Part shown: positions 5,609 through 55,892 of the stretch, piece after piece | Layout of the letters: each line of letters starts with the position of its first letter | Numbering within the stretch: the first letter of the stretch is position 1 | Assembly: GCF_000143415.4 (NCBI RefSeq) | Contig: NW_003314278.1 | Span: forward strand, 1,500,362 to 1,564,361 | Length of the DNA: 64,000 bases | Source of the DNA: Selaginella moellendorffii | Taxonomy: Eukaryota > Plantae > Lycopodiophyta | Direction of reading: 5' to 3' | Notes under the pieces: model-generated | Databases searched by the model: none | Told to the model about the DNA's origin: nothing | The model's input: only the letters and a program-made list of their open reading frames with translations | Position numbers and translations under genes: made by a program

Positions 5609-8036
5609 ATGACGGAGGAGAAGCAGCCGCTCCTCGATCACTACCAGCATCGCCCAGGTTCCAGCGGCAGGGCATCCGCGCTCCATCCCAAGTGCCCGGG
5701 ATGCCGAGTCGCCCATCTCCGGGACAAGAACGCGCCAGTTCCCTTCAAGCTCCTCGTTCTCCTCGGATTTGTGATCCTCGCCAATGGTAAGATTTAAGCA
5801 AGCTCTCTCCATTCACAATCTAATCTTCTCTCTCTCGATTCGATTTGAAACAATGGCAGCGCTTCCAATCGCAGTAGTCTACCCCTTCCTCTACTTCATG
5901 GTAGTGTACTATACCGGCCACGCTTGTGTAAGTTTTTTTTAATGGATTCTCCATCGCAGATAGAAGATCTACACGTTGCCAAGCGGAAAGAGGACATTGG
6001 ATATTACGCTGGATGGATCGGTGAGTTGGAGATCTGAGGAAGAAATGCCAAAACTTGACCTGCAAACTCAATCTATAAGCGACATTTAACACTTCTTTTG
6101 TTGTCTTGTCCAGGATCATCTTTGATGATTGGGCGAATGCTCACTGGAGTCCTCTGGGGCGTCATAGCCGACAGATATGGTCGAAGGAAGGTCATGGTTT
6201 GCGGCATTCTCTCAGTGTACGTAGCATCGATCGACATAAGTCCTTCCAAGAATGACTGAACTCTTTGCAGGGTGGTTTTCAACACCTTGTTTGGGCTTAG
6301 CACGAGCTTGTGGATGGCTCTGCTCACGCGATTTCTCTTGGGAGGTTTCAATGGAATGCTTGGAACCGTCAAGGTGAGCTATCAAAGTTTCAAGACTAAG
6401 CAATCAAAGTACGTTTGTGCTTATCGACAGGCATACGCTTCCGAGATCTGTAGCGAGCAACATCAGACGATAAGCATGTCAATGGTGCGTAAACTTTTGC
6501 TCTCAAAGCCTTGAAATTCTATGTTTCTAGTGCAGGTTAGCACGATGTGGGGATTTGGCCTTATTATCGGACCAGCTATGGGTGGCTATCTAGCACAGGC
6601 AACTGACTTCTCGAATTTCTCAAGTTCCGTGATCTCATGTGAATTTTTTTTCTCGTCCTTACAGCCTGCGATCAAGTATCCAAACATCTTCAAATCCGGG
6701 AGCTTGTTTGCGAAATTTCCTTACTTGTTGCAAGCACTTGGCGTCCTTGTGTTCGCATTGATAGCACTGGTTATGTGCTTCTACTTGCCGGTACGTTGCT
6801 TAGTTTCCCAAGTTCTCGGACAAAAGATCACGGAAAAGCTTTTGTGCTGTGTGTGGGGGTCAGGAAACACTTCATAAAGATCACACTTCTCTTGAAATTG
6901 ATGAGGAGGACACAGGCAAGGATCACATTGCTGTGGAGAGTGATACAAAGGAGAAGCAATCCGAATCCATCTTTAGAAACTGGGGATTTATTTCCTCCAC
7001 AATGGTCTACTGTGTCTGGTCTCTACACGACATAGCTTACACCGAGGTACATTTCACGACAATCATAGAGATTTTCTAAAATCACTCTGAATATTTAGAT
7101 CTTCTCGCTGTGGGCCGTGAGTGGAAGATCATACGGTGGACTTGGTTTCACGAGCTCCAACGTTGGACAAGTTCTTGCAATATCCGGTGCGTTCTATCAC
7201 TTAGACTGGATCGTCATTGTTTACTTCTTTCTTTTTATTCACAGGCTTGTCTATGCTTTTGTTCCAATTGACTTTGTTTCCTATCTTTGCAAAGTGGCTC
7301 GGGCCGATCCGGTTGACACGAGTACCAACAGTAAGCGATCACGCTCTTATCAGACTCTCCACTTTTTTGTTCCTTTCTCTTCGCTCTAAAGATTCTCTTG
7401 CATTGCAGCTAGTAGCAATTCCTATATTGACGGCGTATCCATTCTTCTCAAAACTTCACGGGAACTCTCTCTGGGCGATACTTCTCATCGCGTCGATCAC
7501 CAAGTTGATTCTGGGTGTAAGTTAAGCTCCTCCTGGATTTTGCTTCTGATTTTGCTCGATTCCAGCAAGCCACATTCACGGGCTCCTTCATACTCATCAA
7601 CAATTCAGTGGTAAGCCGATTGTCTCATATCCCGCCCCATTCAGTCATACTAAACAAGTGGCTTTGTCCAGAAACAAGCGCAAAGAGGCGCCGCCAATGG
7701 TTTCTCTCTGAGCATTGTGTCACTGTTCAAGGCAATTGGCCCCGCGGGTGGTGGCTCAGTGTAAGTGTATTATATGCGCAAAATCTCTTTCACGCGTGAG
7801 ACTAATTTGATTTGCATTTCAGCTTTGCGTGGTGCCAAACAAGGCAACACACCTGGCTTCTCCCAGGTAAGAGGATTACATTAGAATGATCTCTGGGAAG
7901 TATATAATTTTTAATCTTCAATGATACAGGTGATCACCTCGTGTTCTTTTTCCTCAACTTCTTTGCGCTTCTCACGGCGCTCATGACATGCAAGCCATTC
8001 CTTCCATCGTCCACGGCCCACCCTATACTGGAATAG
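5609..8036 (+). CDS. ZIFL: ZINC INDUCED FACILITATOR-like MFS transporter, many short introns
   Basis: Exons encode [98 protein letters not shown] and C-terminal DHLVFFFLN...PILE*, all typical of plant ZIF1/ZIFL. Introns are GT-AG, with one GC-AG. Confidence 0.92.
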
Positions 8037-8219
8037 ATCAAACTTTCCAACTATCAAGCAACCAAACAAAAAGGAGAATTCTTTAAAGAAATACGTGTTC
8101 AAGAAATATCAAGCAACCTCTAGAGAAAGGGAATTGTAAAATATCCGCTTTCGTACGTACTTATCCGGCAATGCGCTGTCGAAGCCCCATTGGCGAAGCT
8201 CCGGTCTACGGTCGGTGAA

Positions 8220-8335
8220 CGCAAACGCGTCAACGCAACAGGGGGTTTCAGGCCACCACGTGCCGCCATCTCTCGCGTCGATCTGCCCGATGGACGGCCG
8301 GCGTCGTCACACGTGTTGGGCCTCCACGTCAACAC
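8220..8335 (+). promoter_or_regulatory. Cluster of CGCG-box, W-box core (GTCAA) and G-box (CACGTG) motifs upstream of the U-box gene
   Basis: aaacgcgtcaac at ~8224, ccacgtg at ~8256, cacgtg at ~8310 and ccacgtcaac at ~8324. Confidence 0.4.
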
Positions 8336-8684
8336 TTCCCTCTGTTTCGTGCCGGCTTCCCATTGTCTCTTTAGGGCTGGGAAGAGCGGTGTTTTATTGG
8401 CGTGCCACCCCTTCCTCGTTTTCCATCGCTCGCCGAGCTTTCCTTCTCGTGATTGCCAAATTCGAGCGTCTCTATTCTTTTCTCTCTTCGCACAGGCCAA
8501 TCGATCGAGCGAGGGATACTGTTCCATTCCAGGCGAGGACGAATTCGTGATGAGCGAGGGAAGAATTCGTGGATTCCCGGTACCGCTTCTCTTCTCTGTT
8601 AGGCACTCAATCCAGCCATTGTCATAGTAGTAGCACAGAGTCCCCTACGAGCTGGGCATTTCCTTCGTAGATCATCGCTCTGGG

Positions 8685-9911
8685 ATGGATCAAACCGATC
8701 TTCATCCAGTGCCTCCACCCGAATTTATCTGCCCAATTTCTCTGGAACTAATGCGGGATCCCGTAACCGCTTGCACAGGCGTGACATACGATCGGAGCAG
8801 CATCAACAAGTGGCTCGAGCGCGGCCAGGATTGCTGCCCAGCGACGATGCAACCGCTCCACCAGAATCACTCGCTCGTGCCCAACAACGCGCTGCGGAGT
8901 CTCATCCATCAGTGGTGCGAATCGCATTCCACCACCAGCGACCTCTTCCGGAGCTCCACCAGCCCGATCGACAGGCCGCACATCCTCCTCCTGCTAGACA
9001 GGATCCAGAGAGACCCTGCCAATGTTGACGCCCTCTCCAAGCTCAAGAGCAAGGCGCGGGAGAGCACCAAGAACAGCCGAGCTATCGTCGACGCCGGCGC
9101 CGTCACCGTCCTGTCCGGCGTTCTCAGTGCTCCGTATCCCCAGGACGCGAGGGATCCTCCGGACAAGGCGTGGCTCCAGCCGATTGAAGAGGCAATCGCC
9201 ATCCTCGCCTATCTTCCCGCCAGTTACAACTCGCGAAGAGCCCTAATCTCGCCCAAGCCCCTCCGTTCGATCTCGTGGATTCTGTGCATGGGTTCCCCGC
9301 CGGGAATGATGAGCGCGATAGCGGTGCTAGATGGCCTAGCCAGCGATAAGGGCGCCCAGATCGCCATCGGATCGATGGCTGGGGTGATCGATGGTCTCGT
9401 CGCCATTCTGCGCCGGAATGGCAACCAGGTGTTAGTCAATTCCAGCCTCAGGGCATTGCTGGGCATTTGCTTGCCACTGAGGAACAGGGCTAGGGCGGCG
9501 CGCGCCGGCGCCGTGGCGGCGCTGGTGGAGCTCCTCCCGGACACCAGCGGCGGCGTGGCGGAGCACATCTTGATCGTGCTGGAGCTCCTCTGTGGCTGCG
9601 CCGAGGGCCGGGCGGCGGTCGATGATCACGCGCTCGCGATCCCGGCGATCGTGAAGAAGATTTTGAGGGTGTCGGACTCCGCGACTGCGAATGCGGTGGG
9701 GATTTTGTGGGCGGTGTGTAGGGACAGTGGGAGGAGTAGCGCCGCCATGAGGGATAGGACTGGCGGATTGGGATTGTTTGGGAAATTGCTACTGCTGCTA
9801 AGAAGGGATGTGAGCCCAGGGACGAGGCACAAGGTGATTGATATTCTAGACAAGGTCTACAATGCACGAATGGATCTCTCCTCCTCGCCACCACCGCCCG
9901 CCTCTTTGTAG
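8685..9911 (+). CDS. U-box/ARM-repeat E3 ubiquitin ligase (PUB, CMPG1-like class), intronless
   Basis: U-box PPEFICPISLELMRDPVT...TGVTYDRSSINKW...CPAT...LVPNNALRSLIHQW, followed by ARM-like repeats (AGAVAALVELL, LELLCGCAEGRAA, KKILRVS). Confidence 0.95.
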   Translation: MDQTDLHPVPPPEFICPISLELMRDPVTACTGVTYDRSSINKWLERGQDCCPATMQPLHQNHSLVPNNALRSLIHQWCESHSTTSDLFRSSTSPIDRPHILLLLDRIQRDPANVDALSKLKSKARESTKNSRAIVDAGAVTVLSGVLSAPYPQDARDPPDKAWLQPIEEAIAILAYLPASYNSRRALISPKPLRSISWILCMGSPPGMMSAIAVLDGLASDKGAQIAIGSMAGVIDGLVAILRRNGNQVLVNSSLRALLGICLPLRNRARAARAGAVAALVELLPDTSGGVAEHILIVLELLCGCAEGRAAVDDHALAIPAIVKKILRVSDSATANAVGILWAVCRDSGRSSAAMRDRTGGLGLFGKLLLLLRRDVSPGTRHKVIDILDKVYNARMDLSSSPPPPASL

Positions 9912-44911: not shown

Positions 44912-47013
44912 ATGGAGGCATATTCGCGGGGATTCGCTTCTCTGGCGTGTTCTTCGCTGCCCAGGAATCTAAGCAGCGCTAGGGCTCCACCATTCCATTC
45001 CTCCGCGGATTCCTTCCTTCGCTCCCGGATTTCGTTCGTTCTTTTCTCGCGGGGGCGCCGCGGGGGCGTAGGGCGGCAGCCATTGCGGACGCTGTTCATG
45101 GCGCCCAGGGACGATCTGGAGATTGTTTCCGGGGATGGGGAGCTGCGCAGCGAGATCCTCCACAACATGCCCACGGTGAAGAGGCGCAAGTACCGCGCGT
45201 TCCCGGTGATTGGCAGCAACCGGCATGTGGAGACCGTCTTCGCGGCATTCTACCGCCATCGGCCCAAGATGAGGTTCCGGAGGGAGTGCTTGCGGATGAT
45301 CGATGGCGGCACTGTGGCGCTGGACTGGCCGGTCATGGGCGAGGATCGCGACGCCGCCAAGTGGAGAGAAAAGCTTCCATCCGATGCTCCAGTTCTCATC
45401 TTCCTGGTAAGAACACTTCTCTCTCGTAGAGTTATAGTTTTTTCCTTCTTTTCTTGCATGCTTTGCATGGTTGGAGCTCTTTCTTTTCCATCGTTCTCGA
45501 GGAAGAGTTCTTCGTTGTTTCTTCGAGAACGACGTCGAGCTTGCCAAGTAGTTTTTCTCGTTGTTTCTTCGAGAGCCACGTAGTTCTTCGTTCTTTCTAG
45601 AGCTTGCCAAGTAGTTTTTCTCGTTCTTCGTGTTCTCGATAAGAGTTCTTCGAGAGCTTGCCAAGTACTTCTTCGTGTTCTCGATAAGAGTTCTTCGTTG
45701 TTTCTTCGAGAATCACGTAGTTCCTCGTTAGTTTTTTCCTTGGAGTTCTATGTTTTTTCTTCAAGAGTTTGCTACGTATTTCTTCGTGTTCTCACGGACT
45801 TCTTTGCTCTCCTCAGCCAGGACTAACTGGAGGAAGCCATGACTCGTACGTGAAATACTTGGTTTCAAGAGTTCGAAACATTGGATGGCACACGGTGGTA
45901 TTCAACAGCCGTGGCTGTAGTGACAGTCCAGTTACGTCTCCAAAGGTACCAAAGAGGAACGAAATGCCTTTGTGGTTATTTGATTCTTCTTCTCTTTCGT
46001 TCGTAGTTCTACTCAGCTTCTTTCACAGAAGATTTGAGACAAGTCGTGAGATTTGTGGCGTATCGTTTCCCCGAGTCGAGGATCTACGCGGTCGGATGGT
46101 CGCTGGGGGCCAACATTTTAGTGCGTTATCTCGGCCAGGTTCGTGTCGTCAAGCACAAACTTTCCGACTTGGTTTGTAATTGGCAGGAGGGAGAAAATTG
46201 TATACTCAGTGGCGCAGTGTCCCTGTGCAATCCTTTTGATCTTGTGGTTGCAGACGAGGATTTTCGCAAAGGTTTCAACAACATCTACGACAAGAGCCTT
46301 GCAACGAGCCTTCGGACAATCTTTAGAAAGTAAAGTCACAACGTTGAGTTTCCTTCGTCGTTGTCTGTAATTCGCACTGCAGGCACGCGGCCTTGTTTGA
46401 AGAGATCGGTGGTGAATACAACATTCCTCTGGCGGCCAATGCAAAAACCGTGAGACAGTTTGACGAAGGATTAACTCGAGGTAACGAGTACTTAATAAAA
46501 CCTTGAACTTACACTGTGTGTTTTGGCTTTCGTAGTTTCGTTCGGCTACAGGTCAGTGGATGAATACTATGCCGATGCCAGCAGCTCGAAATCTATCGAG
46601 CACGTCAAAGTCCCATTGTTTTGCATCCAGGTCTTGTTCCTTTCATTTTTGTTTCTAGACAATCTCGTAAAACTCTTCCATTCCAGGCTGCCAACGATCC
46701 TATTGCTCCAAACCGAGCCATTCCTCGTGCAGCAATCAAGGTACGAGCTTTACTCGTGGAAGGAAAGCAATGTTTTTCAAACGAGTTCTTTGTCCAGGAG
46801 AATCGCAATTGTTTGCTCGTGGTGACACCGAAAGGAGGCCACCTTGGCTGGGTCGCAGGCCAAAACGCCCCGTTTGGAAATCCATGGACAGACACTGTGG
46901 TGGTGGAGTATCTGGAAGCAGTCGAGTCGCTCTACAGGGATAGAAAATCAATCCAGAGGGAGCAAGTCTCGAGAAAAGAGGACGATCACGTCGAGATCGC
47001 TTGCGCCACCTAG
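44912..47013 (+). CDS. EMB8/ABHD1-3 (YheT-like) alpha/beta hydrolase with a putative transit peptide, multi-exon
   Basis: NRHVET, RRECLRMIDGGTVALDW, PGLTGGS, NSRGC, GWSLGANIL (catalytic Ser), AANDP (Asp), GGHLGW (His). An alternative start is at 44879. Confidence 0.92.
45490..45790. repeat. Degenerate tandem repeats inside intron 1 of the EMB8-like gene
   Basis: gagcttgccaagta x3, gagttcttcgttgtttcttcgaga x2 and ttcttcgtgttctcgataagagttcttcg x2. Confidence 0.75.
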
Positions 47014-47099
47014 AGCGACGCGGCTGCTCGTTCATAGCTATCGATCGGTGTGTACATAGAGACGATTCTTTCATTCATAAAGAAGAAAAGCGAGAGCTT

Positions 47100-47879
47100 T
47101 CACGCAAACCCGACGAGAGCGCTCGCGAATTCTTCCGGGAGCTCGATCTGGACGTCGATTCCACCGTCCTGGATGAAGCAAAGCTCTCCATTGCGAAGCT
47201 CTTTGGATGTTTTGATGGTAGCATCTTTGAGAAGCTCGTGGTCGCCACACATGCAAAGTGTCGGCTGCGTGATTCTGTCCACCAAGCTCTCGACTTTGAG
47301 AAGAAGAGGGAGCTCCCGCGCCCTGGGATTGCTCTGGAGCATCTCCAGCAGCCTCGAAGCTCGAGCGTGCGGCGGCATTTTGTAGCTTGGCTTTCCCGGC
47401 ACCTTGTTCCTGATCTTCCAGAACTTTATCACGGCTTTGAGATCCTCGTCCTCGAAGTCTGGAGCTTCCGGCACCAACTTCTTCACGCTCTCGTCTAGAA
47501 TCGGGACCCCCCACAGTGCCAGCTTCTTCACACTCTCCGGGAAATCCACCGCAAGCTGCATCGCTATGGCTGCTCCAATGTGATGACCCACGACAATGCT
47601 TGGCTCCGAGAGAGTTAGCAAGGGAATCGCTTCAAAGACGTACCTCGTGATGGTCTCGAGGCTGACTTCGCAGTGGAAGGACTCGCCATAGCCTGGTATG
47701 TCTATCGCCACTGCTTGGTATCCTCGACTTGCCAGCAATGGCATGACGGGCTCCCACATCTTTGACGAGCTTGGATGCTGGTGGAGAAGAAGAAAACTTC
47801 CCAGAGAATTCCCTTCCGGATCGGCGCGGCGATAGTGAATCTGGCCATCGCTCACGGAGACGTAGCCTTTTCGGATCAT
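47100..47879 (-). CDS. Intronless microbial-type alpha/beta-fold hydrolase with a GHHIG elbow
   Basis: 259 aa: GQIHYR, LLLHQHPSSSKMW, AIDIPGYGES, VVGHHIGAAIA, PESVKKL, ITQPTLCMCG, E.PEEF. It has all the Abhydrolase scaffold landmarks, but His at the nucleophile position. Confidence 0.85.
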   Translation of the reverse strand: MIRKGYVSVSDGQIHYRRADPEGNSLGSFLLLHQHPSSSKMWEPVMPLLASRGYQAVAIDIPGYGESFHCEVSLETITRYVFEAIPLLTLSEPSIVVGHHIGAAIAMQLAVDFPESVKKLALWGVPILDESVKKLVPEAPDFEDEDLKAVIKFWKIRNKVPGKPSYKMPPHARASRLLEMLQSNPRARELPLLLKVESLVDRITQPTLCMCGDHELLKDATIKTSKELRNGELCFIQDGGIDVQIELPEEFASALVGFA

Positions 47880-47961
47880 TTTCCACTGTGTAGTAGCCTA
47901 GAACAGTAGTCAACTCAAAAAACAAAAAGAAGAATGGGGTCACTATAACAAAACAACTTTG

Positions 47962-49844
47962 TCACGTCTCTCTGGTTAACCTCCTGGCTGTTGAAGCTGC
48001 TTGGAGTAACGCCATGGCGGTTTCGTCGTTTTTGAGTATCTGTGGCATAAAAAAGTTTCTTGAGAACAGAGAAAAGATAAGCATGAAAGAGCGCACCTCA
48101 GCTTTCGCTATATTGTTGAGCTGTTCTTGGCGTTTGATCTGCTCCTCCAGATCGAGTATCTTCCTAGACTCGGCTTGAATAACTTCATCCGTGCGCCTAT
48201 GACAAGGTGACAATGTTGCCTGACACTGGAGCTCGAAAAAACACTACTTACAATCTCTCCCTTTCGAGATCCGCACCATGCTTTTGTTGTTCTTTAATCC
48301 AGAACTGGTACTCCTTGGCCATAGCTTCCGCATCTTCCTGGAAAACTGTGTGAGAAGCTTTGTAACAATGAAATGACAAAGAATTACCTGTAGATAGTCT
48401 ATAAACTTTCCGAGAGGACTTATAGCTTGGCACAGAGCTTGAATGCTTTCTCGTAACTTTTGCAACTGTTCTACGCACGAGTATTTGGTACCGAAGGAAT
48501 AGACGCGAAAAGATACCTCTCACCTCGTCGCGTTTGCTGTCCGTCTCGACCTTGGTTCCACTTGGCTCCGTATACACTTCAGACAATTCCTCATCCTGGA
48601 CGCTGTTCTTATCTGTGGGAACAATATCAGACACTTTTTCTATCGAGCTAGAAAAATAAAAAAGGAGAATCACAGACATTATCATCTTTATCATCCATGT
48701 TTGAGCCCCGCTGGTTCTACCTGGAATTTGCCCAAGTCCGTGATCCTCAGTTTGTATCGGAGCTGCAACAAACACTTCCTGGAGCGACTAGAAAACCACA
48801 AAAAGAAGAAGCTGACCTTGGTGGCTGAGATCCAACTCTGTGGAAGCCATGCTCTCCGCTACAGCATCCTCTTCTTGCTCGTTCACAGCCCCAGGCGAAT
48901 AGATAACTTGTACCTTGGTGGCATCCACAGGCTGTGGTGGTGTGGCCACTTCTTGGGTCCTCGTCTTGTTGGAAAGCTCTGCCGCGTCGGGAGAAGGACT
49001 GTAGATGGACCTCCTTAGCTTCTCGGATGATACAGACTGACTCGAGGAGGCGCTTTCACGAGATATGAGTCCACTGTAAAGCAATGCAAGTAACTTCGCG
49101 ATCAAAAAGCTAAACCATTGCACAAAGAGGTACCTATGATCGGATGAAGGCATAAAGTCTCCAGCTAAACAGCGGTAGACAGCTTTTGCAGCTTTTTGGC
49201 TGTCTGTAGTGGCTGCTTGAGCCAGCATCTGTTCATAGAATTTTGTTTTAGTATATTTTTCCAAAGCATCAACAGCTCTTCACTGGCCTGCAAGAAGACG
49301 TTGGTTTGCTCGGGTTCCAGCCCAGCCAGAATCTGTACGAAAGCCAAGTAGAAATCTCGAGGCCAAGATGGAAGAAACGAAAGAAAAAACGAAGGTATAC
49401 CTTGGCTGGACGCACTGGAACGTTCGCATTTAGCGTAAGGCCAACGCAGTTGATGATCTTCGTGAGATAACGCAACTTAGCGTCCTTGTCCTAGAATTTT
49501 GACAAAGAACAATGCGAGGCTTCAATGCAAAGAACAATGCGCGAGGAAACAAATACAAAAGAAAGTACCTTAAGCTCCAATGGAGCAAGCTCGTCGGCTG
49601 CGAAGAGTCCCTCTGCAAACCCGGTGCGTCGCGTAACCTGGAAACCAAGAAATTCTATTGCTCCAAAGAAAGAACTAGAAAAAAGAAAAACCGGGAAGAC
49701 AATGCCGCAAACCTCAGAGACGATGTCGTGGAGGAATCGAAATGGCGGGCGCTTTAGCAGCGCCTCCGTGAGCTTTGGACGCTTCACGATTGGATCGATC
49801 CCGTGCTGGAGGAGGCGCTGCGTCGTCATCCAGTAGGCCTCCAT
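47962..49844 (-). CDS. IFT54: Intraflagellar transport protein 54 / TRAF3-interacting protein 1 (MIP-T3), multi-exon
   Basis: N-terminal KRPKLTEALLKRPPFRFLHDIVSEV, GFAEGLF, KILAGLEPEQTNVFLQ and C-terminal KLRESIQALCQAISPLGKFIDYLQED. Confidence 0.92.
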
Positions 49845-54210: not shown

Positions 54211-55892
54211 TATGCATACACACAAACACACAACAGGGGAGGGCCTTATCAACAACATTCTTACTGTGATTTAAGATATGTTTAGCGCCACTTTTTAATC
54301 TTTGTTTTGGTTTTCTTTCCTACGTCGTTGCCACTGAAGGAGTTGGCTAGATGTCAAGCGTCATTTTAGGGCATTAAGCTGGATTTCATTATCAGTCGCC
54401 CTCAAAGGTGGCCGCACTTAGTTGTTTATGGTTATGATGATAGGGAGTTTCTTCTCTTTGAGCGGTGGTCTTTAGTGGAGTGTTTTGTGGAGAGGGAAGT
54501 GATCATAGCAGCTAAAACCACAGCCTCATCCGATTCCTCTCCACTCAGTGGGCGGGGACAAAATTGTACGTGGGTTTGAAAAGCTAGAGATGGAGAGATT
54601 TTGTGCAGAGAAAAATTGTATAATAGTAATGAGTGAACTTTCTGAGATTTATATCATATAAATCTTAAACTTTTTTTTTTGAGAACTTTACAATTTAAAT
54701 AAAAACTCATTTAGGAGTTATGCATAAAATATTCTTCATACAAAATTGCTACATTTAAAAAACAAATTCCACCTTTATATGGATTATTGAGTTTTTTAAT
54801 TATATCACTTTATCACATTGCCATAAAACAATATTATTTATATTTTAAATTTTCTTTTCTTTTATTATTATTATATTAGAAACATTATCCATTTTTGAAA
54901 AAAATAAATCAGTTCCAATATTATATTTAATATTTTATTTAATATAAGGTTTTTGTGATCCATAAGGAAATGGTTATCCATATAGTGAAAGAAAAGTTAC
55001 ATAAAAACATAAGTTTGTCATTTCAACTATATGCTTCATGACATTATAACTATATTTTATGATTATATGGTATAATAAATTTAAGTAGAAAATAAAATTT
55101 TATAAAATAATAATAAATAACTTAGTTACTAGCTAGTCCAAAAAAAATGCATTAATCAATTAAAGATCAATCATTAAAAAATATTAAAAATCAGTCATAA
55201 CTTGATATTTTTATGCTCCAATTAATAGCTTCTTGATAAATGAGTGAGAAAAAGTTATCTACAATAAAATTATACTAAAAATTGTTTAAAAAAATTCATT
55301 TAAATATAAAATTTTGAAGTAATTTTTAATATAATAAGTATTTTGTGTTAAATAGTTATCTCTTTGCAAGCACATTCCTAAATTTTTTAAAATTAACATT
55401 AGTCAAAAGCACTAATAAATAATTAACCTCACGTTGTACACAAAATAGGTCCACAACAATCACAAACAACTCTACTCAAGAAAAGACTTGGTGAAAATGC
55501 AAGAACACCAAGATATACAAGCATCATCTTTAATATAATAGTTAAGCTATTCAATATCATAATTTAACAAAACTGTAAAATAGTTTATATTTTTTTAATA
55601 TATATAAGGATTTTGACATGGATCTGGTCATATTTTATTTTGGAGAGTTCTTGCCTATCACTTCAAAGATGCAAAAACTGGAAATTATTAGAAGATTATC
55701 ACCTTAGATGCAAGTTATATATTTTCTTTTCTTTTAAATTTTTATAATTTTTGTAACTATGCCATATTAATATGTATATATGTATGTTATTTTTTACATT
55801 AATATTATCACAAATTGAAAGAATGTAAAGGATGACTAAAATTCAATAGATCACACATGTTATTCTTTAAAAACTTAATGGTTGATAAGAGT

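Follow-up and report, generated by a model that had tools for sequence, protein, structure and literature searches.

An intronless histidine-elbow alpha/beta-hydrolase of Selaginella moellendorffii, its streptophyte-algal relatives and its probable bacterial ancestry

How does a lycophyte come to carry an intronless gene of microbial type, and what could its product do with a histidine in place of the catalytic nucleophile? Both questions are raised by a 259-amino-acid open reading frame (ORF) encoding an alpha/beta-hydrolase in Selaginella moellendorffii. It lies in a 64,000-nucleotide stretch of contig NW_003314278.1 (assembly GCF_000143415.4, forward-strand positions 1,500,362 to 1,564,361), here called the window. 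The original prediction, made from the letters of the window, held that the gene had passed from a microbe to the lycophyte lineage. Our analysis does not bear this out: the closest homologues are those of streptophyte algae, with which the Selaginella protein forms a clade branching like the species tree. Taken as a whole, the explanation that we favour, and consider fairly probable, is that an ancient bacterial gene entered an early streptophyte, descended vertically, was lost from most land-plant lineages and encodes a protein with a His-acid dyad.

An intronless nuclear gene with histidine at the nucleophile elbow

The hydrolase is a real, transcribed and selectively constrained nuclear gene of S. 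moellendorffii. Contigs from 4 runs in 4 studies cover its ORF unspliced, and contigs without any joint extend across 46796-48039 (again 4 runs, 4 studies). Together with the ORF listing, they confirm the clean, intronless reading frame first described (Table 1). The contigs are RNA-derived, because introns of both neighbouring genes are removed in the same contigs. At least seven are missing from an ABHD gene and at least six from IFT54, in agreement with the intron-rich surroundings noted at the outset. Because these contigs give neither strand nor transcript ends, they establish transcription of the region and not of a separate hydrolase mRNA.

A second locus, on the 459-kb scaffold GL377686.1, has the same synteny of MIP-T3/IFT54, hydrolase, ABHD and pentatricopeptide repeat (PPR) genes, among others. 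There, MIP-T3/IFT54 lies upstream on the same strand, the ABHD gene (479 amino acids) is convergent and a PPR gene is also present. Their identity of 97-98% across 15 kb marks the two loci as two haplotypes. A same-length S. moellendorffii protein (P0001), 98% identical, is annotated as 'bifunctional epoxide hydrolase 2 isoform X2'. Within the hydrolase coding sequence (CDS), the haplotypes differ by 7 synonymous and 6 non-synonymous changes (pN/pS 0.25), with replacements rarer than the neutral expectation (binomial p 0.015, from only 13 differences). The base composition of the gene is host-like and without anomaly, its GC content at third codon positions (GC3) being 0.665 against 0.69 and 0.76 in two neighbouring PPR ORFs. 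Contamination is ruled out by the synteny shared between two haplotypes, by the 459-kb scaffold and by RNA contigs that continue into spliced plant neighbours.

The protein scores 54.5 bits (E 1.7e-14) with Pfam Abhydrolase_1 (PF00561), whose cut-off is 25.8, and its matches to Hydrolase_4 and Abhydrolase_6 likewise exceed the respective cut-offs. An AlphaFold2 model built on a 118-member family alignment (mean predicted local distance difference test score 92.5, predicted template-modelling score 0.91) has the strand and helix order of the eight-stranded alpha/beta-hydrolase fold and shows a strand-turn-helix elbow and a cap after beta6 at residues 132-200. Foldseek gave this model TM-scores of 0.7-0.83 against many solved hydrolases. 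Since beta1 starts at residue 2 and bacterial homologues start in the same way, there is no targeting peptide, as had been proposed; the product is a cytosolic-type alpha/beta-hydrolase-fold protein without an N-terminal extension.

The three unusual motifs singled out in the original prediction, HQxP, GHHIG and GGID, do occupy the functional positions claimed for them, both by direct reading and in alignments to solved enzymes. The oxyanion-loop motif that replaces HGxP is followed directly by S37, S38 and S39. In phmmer searches against PDB chains, the Selaginella stretch 'VVGHHIGA' aligns to 'VVGHDRGA' of Alr0039 (3qyj), and the elbow also aligns to 'VGRDIG' of Cif-like 1 (7jqx). Because GHHIG thus pairs with GHDRG and GRDIG, H100 stands at the position of the nucleophile Asp, while H99 is the ordinary His that precedes the nucleophile in Asp-type hydrolases. 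The model places residue 100 in the turn joining strand 94-99 to helix 101-112. A profile of the 118 family members, compared with PDB chains, set 'gagvdv' over 'TGHWL' of Cif-like 1 and 'GerD' over 'GrdD' of esterase Est1; from these alignments, I241 replaces the catalytic His and E215 is the acid position after beta7. In the model, strand 207-212 leads to E215 and strand 231-236 to residues 237-242. Position 241 is Ile in the window and Met on the other haplotype. The proposal of a non-canonical triad therefore stands, by alignment and by model.

Among solved structures, the best sequence matches are Asp-nucleophile epoxide hydrolases, Cif-like enzymes and fluoroacetate or haloalkane dehalogenases (3qyj, 7jqx, 3r3u and the C-terminal domain of soluble epoxide hydrolase), with match strengths of 7.9e-11 by phmmer and 3e-36 by family profile. 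These enzymes share with the Selaginella protein the fold, size, cap domain, HGxP His and the 'GH' before the nucleophile. They differ from it in three residues: the nucleophile Asp has become His, the HGxP Gly has become Gln and the catalytic His has become Ile. The NCBI name 'bifunctional epoxide hydrolase 2' is a misfit because the protein has no GxDxG Asp, no beta8 His and no N-terminal haloacid dehalogenase (HAD) phosphatase domain, for which a single domain of 259 amino acids with beta1 from residue 2 leaves no room. The top Foldseek TM-scores (0.82-0.83) belong to Ser-His-Asp esterases and perhydrolases, namely P. fluorescens aryl esterase (1va4/3hea), 1zoi, chloroperoxidase F (1a8s) and Est1 (6eb3). 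They share the aligned beta7 acid, but the Selaginella protein lacks both the elbow Ser and the His after beta8. The same two residues set it apart from plant MES/SABP2 and KAI2/D14, and DAD2 is a weak match to the elbow segment only (E 0.46). With the defining residues absent, and with the family profile and searches in agreement, the protein falls outside the plant MES, KAI2 and epoxide-hydrolase families, in keeping with the original comparison.

A mostly bacterial His-elbow subfamily

An exhaustive HMMER search of 1.84 billion representative proteins returned 8014 matches at E<=1e-3, of which 566 reached E<=1e-10 and 14 reached E<=1e-30. Among the top 150, a majority read G-x-H-[TS]-G-[AGS] at the elbow, the commonest form being GHHTGA, usually together with LLHQ[ST]P, and their tails have no His at the usual site after beta8. 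We defined a His-elbow subfamily from these matches. By its sequence, the Selaginella protein belongs to this large, mostly bacterial and functionally uncharacterised group: of the five features by which we defined it, the protein shows four (the His elbow, HQxP followed by S-S, the beta7 acid and no His after beta8), and it agrees only in part at the cap residues. An uncharacterised bacterial and fungal subfamily had been suggested; the bacterial half of that suggestion is upheld, and no fungal member of the subfamily was seen among the matches. Many relatives in the same search are tandem two-domain proteins of ~550-600 amino acids (P0022, P0040, P0043, P0045, P0051 and P0078 among them) with G-x-H-T-G in both halves (GDHTGA, GAHTGA, GTHTGA), the elbow His being constant and the preceding residue variable.

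Conservation was counted in an alignment of 118 single-domain members (A3), some of its columns over 114 rows. The elbow His is present in 105 of 118 rows (95% of bacterial-type rows) and the His of the H33 column in 112 of 114 (98% of bacterial-type rows). Gln fills the Q34 column in 86 of 114 rows, and Ser the S38 and S39 columns in 95 and 90 of 114. At the acid column (E215), 88 of the 118 rows have Asp and 25 Glu, with Asp in 81% of bacterial rows; in the I241 column, V, T, I and S are the four residues met most often, and His is not among these. Of 48 positions with at least 70% conservation in bacterial rows, the Selaginella protein retains 40 (0.83; bacterial mean 0.85, sd 0.06); it falls within the bacterial range and is an ordinary family member overall. 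In the cap region it keeps W154 and has changed three family residues (G147L, A190L and D195K); the W-x-H motif found there in bacterial and Klebsormidium rows of alignment A1 reads R-A-R.

Existing resources gave the subfamily no home. The best NCBIfam match reached 51.2 bits against a cut-off of 241 (NF002938, dehalogenase), and all 25 matches listed lay far below their cut-offs. The best PDB matches to the whole family profile had Ser or Asp at the elbow in all alignments listed, with no His-elbow structure found, and for the elbow segment by itself the top matches had GGSWG, GHSRG or GHDIG. In a full-text search of the papers available, neither GHHTG nor a His at the nucleophile elbow came up, and none of those papers described the gene. 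A language-model feature search and an ESM Atlas structure search returned only generic bacterial alpha/beta-hydrolase clusters.

The surroundings of the bacterial genes suggest a role in catabolism of an imported small nitrogenous compound. The Pseudonocardia locus contains a peptide/opine-type ATP-binding cassette (ABC) importer (SBP_bac_5), luciferase-like monooxygenases and a GntR regulator. On one metagenomic contig, an SBP_bac_5 gene overlaps the start of the hydrolase gene, with methyltransferase and Amidohydro_1 genes alongside; another contig carries a branched-chain-type importer, a cupin, Amidohydro_2 and Amidohydro_1. These neighbourhoods lie at L086:4696-8557, at L088:4841-7927 and on the JGI contig of P0012. 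The gene context in Nakamurella differs from this theme. No obvious shared operon emerged from the raw-ORF neighbourhoods of Dehalococcoidia loci, and the importer/amidohydrolase theme in Pfam-annotated contexts elsewhere is only loose. Dehalococcoidia metagenome-assembled genomes also hold paralogues from different tree subclades, with three loci in STL-CHL33 and two in KatS3mg060.

Descent of the gene and a proposed His-acid dyad

The algal relatives include proteins of Mesotaenium endlicherianum (P0005; 46% identity over matched stretches, 40-42% over the whole aligned domain), Klebsormidium subtile (P0009) and Closterium (P0018, P0112 and P0129, with more paralogues in five Closterium strains). 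Three further proteins with SM000... gene identifiers (P0050, P0100 and P0165) are presumably from Spirogloea muscicola, and rows P0007, P0008 and P0077 were assigned by tree position only. The nearest named bacterial proteins come from Dehalococcoidia, Nakamurella, Pseudonocardia and Steroidobacteraceae. Word-index protein searches were insensitive, the alignment search missing 5 of 7 of its own inputs, and their blanks were not counted as absence. A single-peptide-pattern search (A4) gave a few Dehalococcoidia loci; most of what it returned, Bradyrhizobium and actinobacterial loci matching only residues 11-123, was kept out of the tree. The Closterium orthologue has an intron of ~0.84 kb and adjoins a TFIIB-domain gene on a 220-kb contig; with such an intron and such a neighbour, the algal copies are not contaminants.

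In a quick tree built from 121 rows, Selaginella grouped with nine zygnematophyte-type sequences (Shimodaira-Hasegawa approximate likelihood-ratio test, SH-aLRT, 97), and Klebsormidium was not firmly placed. A more careful tree (IQ-TREE, LG+C20+F+G4 with posterior mean site frequencies, PMSF; 63 rows, 262 columns; supports given as ultrafast bootstrap/SH-aLRT) returned (Klebsormidium,(Selaginella,Zygnematophyceae)), with 94/84 for the streptophytes, 99/92 for Selaginella plus Zygnematophyceae and 99/96 for Zygnematophyceae. This order mirrors the accepted species branching, and sequences of Chloroflexota and Actinomycetota surround the streptophyte clade. Derived residues, read from the alignment, fit the same order: Glu215 occurs in all named streptophyte rows (the unnamed row P0077 has Asp), Tyr77 is absent from all streptophyte rows and the loss of Gly147 is common to Selaginella and most Zygnematophyceae rows, not Klebsormidium. 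In an approximately unbiased (AU) test, forcing Selaginella into the nearest bacterial clade (16 rows, including Actinomycetota) cost 11.6 log-likelihood units (p 0.027). Because Klebsormidium and Zygnematophyceae orthologues and the Selaginella protein form one species-tree-like clade, the gene appears to predate land plants in streptophyte algae. The original prediction had named an outcome that would refute its own transfer: vertical inheritance of a clade spanning green algae and land plants. Within the streptophytes, this is largely what we found.

Two differences mark the Zygnematophyceae. Their orthologues have Gln, once Glu, in place of the elbow His (P0005, P0007, P0008, P0018 and P0112). 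They also carry a low-complexity C-terminal extension of ~100 residues or more ending in a similar basic motif (...EKKRPTFRGLLKGKFS, ...KERIKSFFRGKSTA), which is missing in Selaginella and Klebsormidium.

The history that best accommodates these results would begin with one acquisition by an early streptophyte from a bacterium, continue by vertical descent through streptophyte algae to Selaginella and include later loss from most land-plant lineages. Since a very diverse bacterial family encloses the streptophyte clade, and no further eukaryotes appeared among matches with a nameable source, one ancient origin from bacteria is the simplest choice; to judge from these sequences, the ultimate origin of the gene is probably bacterial. 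Could the transfer have been direct, from a bacterium or fungus to lycophytes after land plants had diversified? Among annotated land-plant proteins returned, Selaginella is indeed alone, its gene is intronless between intron-rich neighbours and the family is overwhelmingly bacterial. Yet the closest homologues (39-46% identity) are streptophyte algae and not bacteria, Selaginella is sister to Zygnematophyceae with Klebsormidium outside, the AU test disfavours a union with the nearest bacterial clade, derived residues are common to Selaginella and the algae, and GC3 is host-like. We regard such a late transfer as highly improbable: the original claim is plausible as to bacterial ultimate origin and wrong as to recipient and timing.

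The vertical behaviour of the streptophyte clade, and the fact that no donor clade is fixed (deeper nodes 88/81 or lower), would also suit an ancient eukaryotic or plastid-derived gene that never moved horizontally and was lost nearly everywhere but in streptophytes. We consider this unlikely, since many more losses would be required than by a single transfer, the matches with a nameable source included no chlorophyte, red alga, glaucophyte, cyanobacterium or further eukaryote, and those bacterial neighbours that have names belong to Chloroflexota and Actinomycetota and not to the cyanobacteria. A patchy land-plant distribution, and the contrast between an intronless Selaginella copy and a Closterium copy with an intron, could instead point to a gene taken by Selaginella from a zygnematophyte-like alga, or gained by both separately from one unsampled bacterial lineage. 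However, in the tree Selaginella stands outside the sampled Zygnematophyceae, as the sister of them all, and it keeps the ancestral His100, Gln34 and Trp154, which are changed in most or all sampled Zygnematophyceae rows; these scenarios seem very unlikely.

Comparable histories are on record. The MAG DNA glycosylase (PMC5570899) and Tm-1-like (PMC5028733) are reported to be bacterial genes gained by streptophyte algae or the land-plant ancestor. The hydrolase resembles both in being restricted to streptophytes among eukaryotes and nested in bacterial diversity, and differs in that one land-plant lineage only, Selaginella, keeps it in the searches made.

For function, we tentatively propose that the protein is a dyad enzyme, a reading to which we give less than even confidence. 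Since the canonical His is lacking, His100 on the elbow, with its longer side chain, would reach between elbow and acid and pair with Glu215. The His100-Glu215 dyad could then serve as general base or acid on water or on a group of a small substrate lodged beneath the cap; unlike Ser and Asp hydrolases, the protein would form no covalent acyl- or alkyl-enzyme. Selaginella would thus retain the bacterial-type centre, the Zygnematophyceae having changed the elbow His to Gln. Extended to the whole subfamily, the idea is possible, if doubtful: these proteins would represent a previously undescribed catalytic solution in which the general-base His has moved from the post-beta8 loop to the elbow, pairs with the beta7 acid and forms no covalent intermediate; Selaginella would keep the centre inherited from algae, and the Zygnematophyceae would have disabled it and added a C-terminal tail.

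The main rival to a dyad enzyme is a protein of the same descent that keeps the fold without catalysis, as ligand binder, receptor or scaffold. Several alpha/beta-hydrolase-fold proteins have lost a triad residue and kept the fold (the GID1 gibberellin receptor, ABHD5/CGI-58, NDRG and the neuroligins), and plants have repeatedly recruited the fold for receptors (GID1, D14/KAI2). The Selaginella protein likewise has the fold with at least one canonical catalytic residue replaced: the canonical nucleophile and the canonical His are both absent, the cap is altered (G147, A190, D195 and the R-A-R stretch), and the sister lineage of algae makes do with Gln or Glu at the elbow. In contrast to the triad-loss proteins, the His-elbow change is a fixed pattern over hundreds of diverged bacterial clusters, not lineage-specific decay; with His at the elbow and the acid kept, this points to an alternative catalytic centre. 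The elbow His (95%) and the Asp at the acid position (81%) are conserved across more than 100 diverged bacterial clusters, and the bacterial members lie in catabolic gene clusters, which together suggest that the family is enzymatic. Selaginella itself keeps the elbow His, the beta7 acid and 83% of family-conserved positions. We see a binding role as a serious possibility, though not one we would expect to prevail. We also weighed a metal site formed by H33, H99 and H100 and dropped it, as canonical HGxP and GH-D-x-G enzymes keep H33 and H99 too and nothing else spoke for the idea.

Several points weigh against the account that we prefer, ancient acquisition with vertical descent and a dyad. 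The bacterial group in the AU test with p 0.027 was picked after the tree had been seen. An algae-only clade excluding Selaginella was not rejected (AU p 0.25), which allows Selaginella to belong either within the algae or next to them; as a near-miss topology, that clade makes the result uninformative. Klebsormidium is known from a transcriptome only, and its node is moderate (94/84). No other land plants were seen, in protein databases clustered at 50% and 90% identity and with no plant genome searched by tblastn. The tree singles out no bacterial donor, its deeper nodes reaching 88/81 at most. As for mechanism, the His100-Glu215 pairing is inferred, and with G147L, A190L, D195K and R-A-R for W-x-H in the cap, the substrate or any activity of the Selaginella protein may differ from that of the bacterial enzymes.

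Locus layout and implications

The hydrolase is tightly packed between two genes whose spliced exons translate without internal stops and whose GL377686.1 orthologues are annotated with Pfam MIP-T3 (IFT54) and Pfam Abhydrolase_1 (the ABHD neighbour). The IFT54/MIP-T3 introns, on the minus strand, have CT..AC ends and lie within 48039-49134; its spliced exons translate to '...ARRLTRET*', with the stop codon at 47962-47964. The ABHD neighbour, on the plus strand and of canonical type, has GT..AG introns within 45405-46796, one of which (45405-45816) is 410 nt long among introns of 48-61 nt.

Table 1. Positions of the hydrolase gene, its key motifs and the adjoining exons in the window.
Feature	Position	Strand	Basis
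Single-exon CDS of the His-elbow alpha/beta hydrolase	47100..47879	-	ORF listing; ATG start; 259 codons + stop
Oxyanion-loop motif H33-Q34-H35-P36 (replaces HGxP)	47772..47783	-	Direct sequence reading
Nucleophile elbow G98-H99-H100-I101-G102	47574..47588	-	Sequence; H100 = nucleophile position
Acid position after strand beta7, E215 within G212-D213-H214-E215	47235..47237	-	Alignment
Loop after beta8, G239-G240-I241-D242; I241 = canonical catalytic His site	47154..47165	-	Profile-PDB alignment
Last coding exon and stop codon of upstream IFT54/MIP-T3	47962..48039	-	RNA joint 48039/48097, CT..AC ends
Last coding exon of convergent canonical ABHD neighbour	46796..47013	+	RNA joints; clean spliced translation ending 47013

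On the same strand, the IFT54/MIP-T3 stop and the hydrolase ATG (47879) are just 82 nt apart (47880-47961), and RNA contigs run unbroken from the hydrolase ORF over the last IFT54 intron to upstream IFT54 exons. The hydrolase may have a start of its own within the 3' region of IFT54, or it may be carried on the IFT54 mRNA. On the other side, 86 nt (47014-47099) lie between the ABHD stop (47013, plus strand) and the hydrolase stop (47100, minus strand), and the 3' ends of these two genes must overlap in antisense. One RNA contig (3575 nt, run X2) links ABHD, hydrolase and IFT54. In the older Selaginella assembly (the GL377686.1 locus), the MIP-T3 gene model at locus positions 6038-8248 extends 248 nt into the hydrolase ORF at locus positions 8001-8780, which is an annotation conflict or a read-through isoform. 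A longer isoform X1 must exist, because NCBI lists the hydrolase as 'isoform X2'. Elsewhere in the window, at 54400-54999, GC falls sharply to 0.287 against a window average of 0.445.

For the biology of Selaginella, these results remove one false positive from the list of recent microbe-to-plant transfers and put a dated case in its place: a gene, probably bacterial, that streptophyte algae already had and that, in the searches made, only one land-plant lineage still has. Three defining features contradict the public gene name, 'bifunctional epoxide hydrolase 2'. For the family, our analysis flags a sizeable and uncharacterised group of bacterial enzymes whose fixed pattern is testable by mutagenesis and crystallography. 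If true, the His-acid dyad would be a new catalytic arrangement in one of the best-studied enzyme folds.

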